Below are positions 562-786 of a stretch of DNA of 64,000 nucleotides, piece after piece; position 1 is the stretch's first letter; every line of letters begins with the position of its first letter. The notes below the pieces were generated by a model. That model saw only the letters and a list, made by a program, of their open reading frames with translations. It was not told where the DNA came from and did no database searches. The stretch is from Octopus sinensis (taxonomy: Eukaryota): the NCBI RefSeq assembly GCF_006345805.1, contig NC_042999.1, forward strand, positions 141,794,001-141,858,000, read 5' to 3'. Position numbers and translations under genes: made by a program.

Positions 562-646
562 AGGATTCTCATCGAAAGCAGGTTGTTATTGATTCCGAGA
601 CTTGCCTGTTGGACATTCTGGACACAGCTGGTCAGGAAGAATACAG
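562..646 (+). CDS. Ras: Ras GTPase, alternative exon 2A (E37-S65; [29 protein letters not shown])
   Basis: Acceptor ttgcatttcag, donor AG|gttggt, 85 nt, phase 1 to phase 2. Contains the DTAGQEEY G3 motif. Y40H and G48S relative to canonical Ras. Confidence 0.85.
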
Positions 647-701
647 GTTGGTTTTAAACATTGGCTAAATTTCATTGTTAATTTGTTTTTTTCCTTTTCA
701 G

Positions 702-786
702 AGGACTCCTACAGAAAACAGGTTGTCATAGATGGGGATACTTGTCTGTTGGATATTCTGGACACAGCAGGTCAAGAAGAATACAG
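702..786 (+). CDS. Ras: Ras GTPase, alternative exon 2B ([29 protein letters not shown])
   Basis: Acceptor ttccttttcag, donor AG|gttggt, 85 nt, same phases as 2A. Canonical Ras effector/interswitch/switch II sequence except E49D. Confidence 0.95.

Follow-up and report, generated by a model that had tools for sequence, protein, structure and literature searches.

A tandemly duplicated effector-lobe exon in the classical Ras gene of octopus and cuttlefish

The window, a stretch of 64,000 nucleotides of Octopus sinensis DNA, carries two adjacent copies of a Ras exon, here called 2A and 2B. The best explanation, which we regard as likely correct, is that an old tandem duplication within a single classical Ras gene gave rise to mutually exclusive exons, so that the gene produces two proteins that differ from each other at three residues.

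The duplicated exon and the gene around it

Exons 2A and 2B are adjacent homologous exons of equal length and phase, each with its own acceptor and donor (Table 1), and each spans codons 37 (in part) to 65 (in part). On sequence reading, a pyrimidine tract plus AG precedes both exons (for 2A see Table 1; tttttttccttttcag before 2B), and the donor, with AG as the end of the exon and GTTGGTT as the start of the intron, is identical after the two. A codon-by-codon count found 16 of the 85 nucleotides to differ (81% identity). Ten codons (D38, S39, R41, K42, V45, I46, C51, D54, A59 and Q61) differ silently and three differ by replacement (H/Y40, S/G48 and E/D49), which corresponds to a pS of 0.63 and a pN of 0.06 by the Nei-Gojobori method. 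This recount reproduced exactly the anatomy described in the earlier note, from the two 85-nt exons with a shared phase and donor to the numbers of differing nucleotides, silent codons and changed residues.

A repeat finder identified a direct repeat of 104 nt with 83% identity (550-653 and 690-793), and the duplicated unit thus takes in both splice sites. In a tblastn search of the window, residues 37-64 of human KRAS4B matched twice, at 561-644 and 701-784, and no third copy of the exon was found in the window; the later exons matched human KRAS4B singly, at ~21.5, 22.9 and 30.4 kb.

Table 1. Positions of the Ras exons and associated features in the window, and copies of the same exon in other lophotrochozoans (positions on the respective contigs).
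Feature	Position	Strand	Remarks
3' splice site region of exon 2A, tttgcatttcag	550-561	+	within the duplicated unit
Ras exon 2A	562-646	+	85 nt; His40, Ser48, Glu49; sequence reading and translation
Intron separating 2A and 2B, GT...AG	647-701	+	55 nt; sequence reading
Ras exon 2B, canonical copy	702-786	+	85 nt; Tyr40, Gly48, Asp49; sequence reading and translation
Exon 2B donor GTTGGTT	787-793	+	same as the 2A donor at 647-653
Ras exon 3	21491-21593	+	third base of S65 through Q99; tblastn and translation
Ras exon 4, IKRVKDADEVPMV	22864-22903	+	tblastn and translation
Ras exon 5 (LVGNKVDL...REIRKY)	30426-30586	+	G4 motif NKVD, G5 motif SAK
Final coding exon with the polybasic tail and CAAX box (KEKKGKNKKKRRRFPCVLL, then stop)	34398-34457	+	coding end KKKRRRFPCVLL
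Patella vulgata (limpet), 2 copies, contig L016	13502-13586, 13635-13719		intron 48 nt; 2-3 nt differ, same peptide
Patella caerulea (limpet), 2 copies, contig L017	12737-12954		intron 48 nt; 2-3 nt differ, same peptide
Lottia gigantea (limpet), 2 copies, contig L021	9426-9510, 9550-9634		intron 39 nt; 15 nt and one residue (L52Q) differ
Liolophura sinensis (chiton)			1 copy of the exon
Saccostrea echinata (oyster)			1 full copy of the exon
Capitella teleta (annelid)			1 copy of the exon

Exon 1 lies upstream of the window and, as seen in the exactly matching RefSeq proteins, holds G1 and G2 together with the larger part of the effector loop. This loop reads YDPTIEDSY in classical Ras, and in the 2A isoform it ends in His, not Tyr. 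Each exon copy encodes the DTAGQ motif (G3), and exon 5 the motifs NKVD and SAK. The full Ras proteins are listed with Pfam PF00071 and align to human KRAS4B with E = 4e-102, the residue numbering being one to one with human KRAS. The 3'UTR reaches at least position 34622, and the gene spans ~130 kb in one octopod assembly. Judged by its motifs and CAAX box, the locus is a classical Ras gene, orthologous to H/K/N-Ras, Ras85D and let-60. At the C-terminus, the polybasic segment KNKKKRRRF is followed by a Pro and the CAAX box CVLL (34443-34457). The final Leu, under the CAAX rules, is suggestive of geranylgeranylation, and a CVLL box after a polybasic stretch suggests a geranylgeranylated, K-Ras4B-like membrane anchor.

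The Ras introns also contain ORF fragments with reverse-transcriptase domains (PF00078), and a 98-nt repeat in three tandem copies adjoins them (27924-28514 (-), 31371-32774 (+) and 32846-33137). The fragments are probably retrotransposon remnants, one of them with a PHD-like finger. Downstream of Ras, an ORF at 49642-50277 (+) includes a CG-1 DNA-binding domain (PF03859, E = 4e-9) and probably represents one exon of a CAMTA-like gene.

Isoforms in public records and transcripts

In an exact look-up, the exons of the window were joined to the invariant lophotrochozoan exon-1 peptide, giving two products of 185 amino acids. The 2B product is identical to XP_014774293.1 ('GTPase HRas isoform X1 [Octopus bimaculoides]'), and also to XP_029633500.1 from O. 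sinensis and to a record from Argonauta hians. The 2A product is identical to XP_014774294.1 (isoform X2, Octopus bimaculoides) and XP_029633501.1 (O. sinensis). The RefSeq X1 and X2 entries are automated models, and both isoforms are modelled in two Octopus species, which answers the concern in the earlier note that the pair might be an artefact of assembly. When 5.8 billion proteins were searched with a 2A-containing query and with a 48-aa 2A-specific peptide, no 2A-type cluster representative was found. This is because the clustering is at 90% identity, and the exact look-up places both isoforms in a single cluster.

The same cluster includes two further 185-aa proteins from RNA-seq assemblies, designated P0241 (2B) and P0245 (2A). 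Four contigs of 0.9-1.3 kb (L002-L005), from four RNA-seq runs and at least two decapodiform species, encode P0245; fifteen contigs encode P0241, and 2B was confirmed in at least 10 of these. As the genomic introns are up to 20 kb long, contigs of this size can only be spliced mRNA. Exon 2A, which the earlier note had regarded as a functional exon, is therefore used, being present in spliced transcripts for a 185-aa protein in all four of these assemblies.

The coding sequences of at least 11 contigs of P0241 and P0245 are identical outside the exon. Contigs L002-L004 are the 2A contigs of Sepia esculenta; runs SRR19578112 and SRR31864754 are from larvae of this species (PMC11917092), and run SRR1386223 is also from S. 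esculenta (PMC6906322). Comparison of the 2A contig L002 with the 2B contigs L007, L008 and L011 found no differences in 586 nt of the 5'UTR and 166 nt of the 3'UTR, and the 473 nt of coding sequence outside the exon were likewise without a difference between 2A and 2B transcripts. The identity of the UTRs and of the remaining coding sequence indicates that the 2A and 2B mRNAs come from one gene and one promoter. The cuttlefish transcripts thus support one gene with mutually exclusive exons, and the suggestion that one Ras locus could make two GTPases holds for S. esculenta, where the mRNAs differ only in the 85-nt exon. The remaining 2A contig, L005 (SRR27666078), belongs to a second decapodiform, which is more divergent (27 differences in 473 nt) and also carries 2A.

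Sequence constraint and the basis of exclusion

Octopus and the decapodiforms share the same 2A peptide, and every nucleotide change in the exon is silent (Table 2). The chance of this without constraint is ~1e-8 to 2e-7, and a count of 10-12 silent and no replacement changes indicates that the duplicate is old and under selection. On these comparisons, exon 2A was present before octopods and decapodiforms diverged, and strong purifying selection has acted on its peptide ever since. The earlier note had argued, from the excess of silent differences between the two copies, that both are under purifying selection and that 2A is no dead duplicate, and the absence of replacement changes between octopus and decapodiforms bears this out. 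Published cephalopod time trees place the octopod-decapodiform split at an age of the order of 270 million years. It is necessarily deeper than the quoted 174-million-year calibration, which lies within the decapodiforms.

Table 2. Nucleotide changes between octopus and decapodiform Ras coding sequences.
Comparison	Silent	Replacement	pS
Octopus exon 2A vs Sepia 2A	12	0	0.63
Octopus exon 2A vs L005 2A	10	0	0.52
Octopus exon 2B vs Sepia 2B	1	0	0.055
Octopus rest of CDS vs Sepia	44	5	0.56

Exon 2B differs between octopus and cuttlefish at only 1 of 85 nt, as against ~13% in other exons. Its rate of change is ~ten times lower than elsewhere in the gene, with exon 2A and exons 3-6 at pS values of 0.52-0.63, and the deficit of silent changes is significant in comparison with both the rest of the gene (Fisher P = 5e-5) and 2A (P = 4e-4). 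Silent sites that are so nearly frozen point to a constraint on the RNA itself. The predicted RNA fold of positions 530-830 was no more stable than that of shuffled sequence (z = -1.14). When 2A, 2B and the intron between them were compared with 22 kb of sequence, complementary matches were at chance level apart from one inverted repeat, 508-531/1605-1628. This repeat offers a pairing of 20-24 nt (92% complementary over 24 nt; blastn-short E = 3e-4), and its first arm is situated 31-54 nt upstream of the 2A acceptor, in the expected branch-point zone. If formed, this pairing might mask 2A, or else both exons might be looped out.

The exclusion of one exon by the other is probably enforced by the very short intron between them, together with the reading frame. 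Candidate branch-point adenosines, picked by eye, are separated from the 2A donor by only ~21-34 nt, and the 55-nt intron would leave too little room between this donor and the branch point of 2B, leading to steric hindrance. In alpha-tropomyosin, a spacing of this kind between donor and branch point prevents the joint use of both sites in exons 2 and 3. The Ras genes would resemble alpha-tropomyosin in the tiny distance from the upstream donor to the downstream branch point, the introns being 55 nt long here and 39-48 nt in limpets, and for octopus Ras the likeness in mechanism is drawn from intron length and candidate branch points. A 64-nt intron in an annelid Ras gene is evidently spliced, which counts against a steric block at 55 nt.

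Since 85 is not a multiple of 3, inclusion of both exons or of neither shifts the frame. With both exons, translation ends early in exon 3, at nt 312; with neither, it ends at nt 117. Both kinds of mRNA would be expected to undergo nonsense-mediated decay, as a backup to the steric block. Neither both-exon nor no-exon products were found in a collection of 15 billion proteins, and their absence carries little weight because such mRNAs would be degraded and would assemble poorly. Exon 2B would be the default exon, given its canonical residues, its longer uninterrupted pyrimidine tract and its larger number of assembled contigs (15 vs 4).

Protein difference, related exon pairs and alternative explanations

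The two 185-residue proteins are identical except for His/Tyr40, Ser/Gly48 and Glu/Asp49. The exon encodes residues 38-64, which comprise the final part of the effector loop, strands beta2-beta3 and the beginning of switch II (DTAGQ). To our knowledge, human H-, K- and N-Ras do not differ in the effector lobe (residues 1-86), which has hardly changed among animals, and the known diversity of Ras isoforms resides in the C-terminal tail. Residues 48 and 49 are located in the beta2-beta3 loop, a part of Ras that has been implicated in the membrane orientation of H-Ras, and the Glu49 of 2A is the common Ras state among the sequences retrieved. Of 289 Ras sequences that were retrieved and span this part of the protein, 286 have Tyr at position 40 and only two have His, both of them cephalopod 2A isoforms. 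Tyr40 is a central effector contact, and the Y40C mutant keeps PI3K activation and loses RAF1, RALGDS and RASSF5 (PMC5147862). Given that Tyr40 is a core effector contact with this mutant phenotype, 2A would be expected to couple differently to effectors, and a changed effector preference of the 2A isoform is plausible. His is a milder replacement than Cys at residue 40 and may alter little.

Mutually exclusive exons derived from tandem duplication are a well-known class (PMC8373072, for example), and RAB6A and RAB6A' are small-GTPase isoforms three residues apart. Human RAB6A/RAB6A' is the closest analogue, as there too a single small-GTPase gene has a tandemly duplicated internal G-domain exon whose copies are used in a mutually exclusive manner; the difference is that RAB6A/RAB6A' is a vertebrate Rab, whereas the octopus pair is Ras. 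Echard et al. in 2000 reportedly traced the RAB6A/RAB6A' pair to a duplicated exon. The residues that differ in this pair flank the switch II/PM3 region, with no effector-loop residue among them. KRAS4A/4B, HRAS p19 and RAC1b are like octopus Ras in that one locus gives rise to more than one GTPase isoform. KRAS4A and KRAS4B swap a C-terminal hypervariable exon, p19 truncates the protein and RAC1b inserts an extra exon, and we know of none among them that swaps an effector-lobe exon. The literature searched, whose coverage was incomplete, yielded no account of paired Ras effector-lobe exons in molluscs or in any other animal. As far as found, the octopus isoforms are present in automated annotation and have apparently not been described or studied. 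The earlier note's caution about novelty was thus fair, in that the isoforms were already annotated, and a published account did not come to light in the searched literature.

The same 85-nt exon is duplicated in limpets, with a tiny intron as in cephalopods (Table 1); unlike in cephalopods, the peptides of the limpet copies are the same or differ by L52Q. Splice sites are present on both copies in Patella and Lottia, and none of the copies encodes His40 or Ser48. The other lophotrochozoan Ras proteins examined share one peptide for the exon stretch. The duplications in limpets and cephalopods, which were compared by a distance matrix on the 85 nt only, may go back to a shared origin, followed by gene conversion in Patella and by loss in other lineages, or may be independent. 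The near-identity of the Patella copies between the two species was considered as a sign of special constraint and set aside as uninformative, all compared Ras exons being identical between P. vulgata and P. caerulea. As the Patella copies encode the same peptide, the keeping of a tandem copy does not always need a protein difference, and explanations based on regulation or on dosage therefore stay alive.

Two further irregularities were observed in bivalve Ras genes. In Saccostrea echinata, intron 2 (L018, 7481-7907) has ~10 tandem copies of a 47-nt unit after exon 2. Each unit joins the terminal 37 nt of this exon to the initial 10 nt of the intron, and the GT donor therefore recurs many times. 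In Mya arenaria, the RefSeq Ras isoform X3 differs from X1/X2 (P0007 vs P0246) only by His27Leu, and residue 27 belongs to a small exon encoding HFVEEYDPTI that may be another alternative or duplicated mini-exon.

It is extremely improbable, and already contradicted, that exon 2A represents a duplicate in decay or out of use, or an artefact of assembly or haplotype. The exon is modelled in two Octopus species and was assembled from four decapodiform RNA-seq runs, its peptide is fully conserved at a normal silent-site rate with the splice sites intact, and the identical UTRs across independent runs make chimeric transcripts unlikely. A His at an invariant position could resemble decay, and the search of 5.8 billion proteins yielded no 2A representative, but clustering at 90% identity explains the latter. 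We also think it improbable that the duplicate exon mainly sets Ras dosage through unproductive splicing, in which a frameshift leads to nonsense-mediated decay and the residue differences are incidental. The exon length does produce early stops in both aberrant products, and in Patella protein diversity cannot explain why the copies were retained. A pure decoy, however, needs no conserved peptide, and 2A has accumulated 10-12 silent changes and no replacement; 2A is moreover translated in frame in the assembled transcripts, the 39-55-nt introns speak against joint inclusion, and aberrant products of either kind were missing from the 15-billion-protein collection.

An explanation in which both isoforms have the same biochemistry and the pair is kept for different splicing regulators, with a regulatory division of labour, is also unlikely, though several features agree with it. 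Only three residues differ, Glu49 in 2A is the usual residue, limpet copies differ by 0-1 residue, and the nucleotide-level constraint on exon 2B suggests a function of the RNA. Against equivalence stands His40, which has been fixed since the octopus-cuttlefish split in place of a residue that is Tyr in nearly all Ras sequences retrieved (286 of 289) and is a core effector contact (PMC5147862). Tandem duplication with mutually exclusive use of 2A and 2B is the reading that we prefer for the gene itself. A broader proposal, which we put forward only tentatively, is that coleoids have had a second flavour of Ras, with His40 and an altered beta2-beta3 loop, since before the octopus-cuttlefish split. 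This form would be switched on by regulated splicing and would re-route signalling in particular tissues or stages, for example from RAF to PI3K-like effectors. The near-frozen exon 2B would then be part of the RNA switch, and the exon duplication would be ancient or recurrent in molluscs, limpets included.

The diversity of Ras is known in the C-terminal tail, and here a single gene makes two variants of the effector lobe by choice of an exon. Mutation of Tyr40 is a textbook way to separate PI3K from RAF/RalGDS signalling, and this is the residue that 2A replaces. The 2A isoform is thus a natural experiment in effector selectivity, unchanged since the divergence of octopus and cuttlefish. The duplicates in limpets and the frozen silent sites of 2B raise the separate question of what regulates exon pairs of this kind and why both copies are kept. 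For cephalopods, the exon pair adds a signalling example to the post-transcriptional diversification of proteins.
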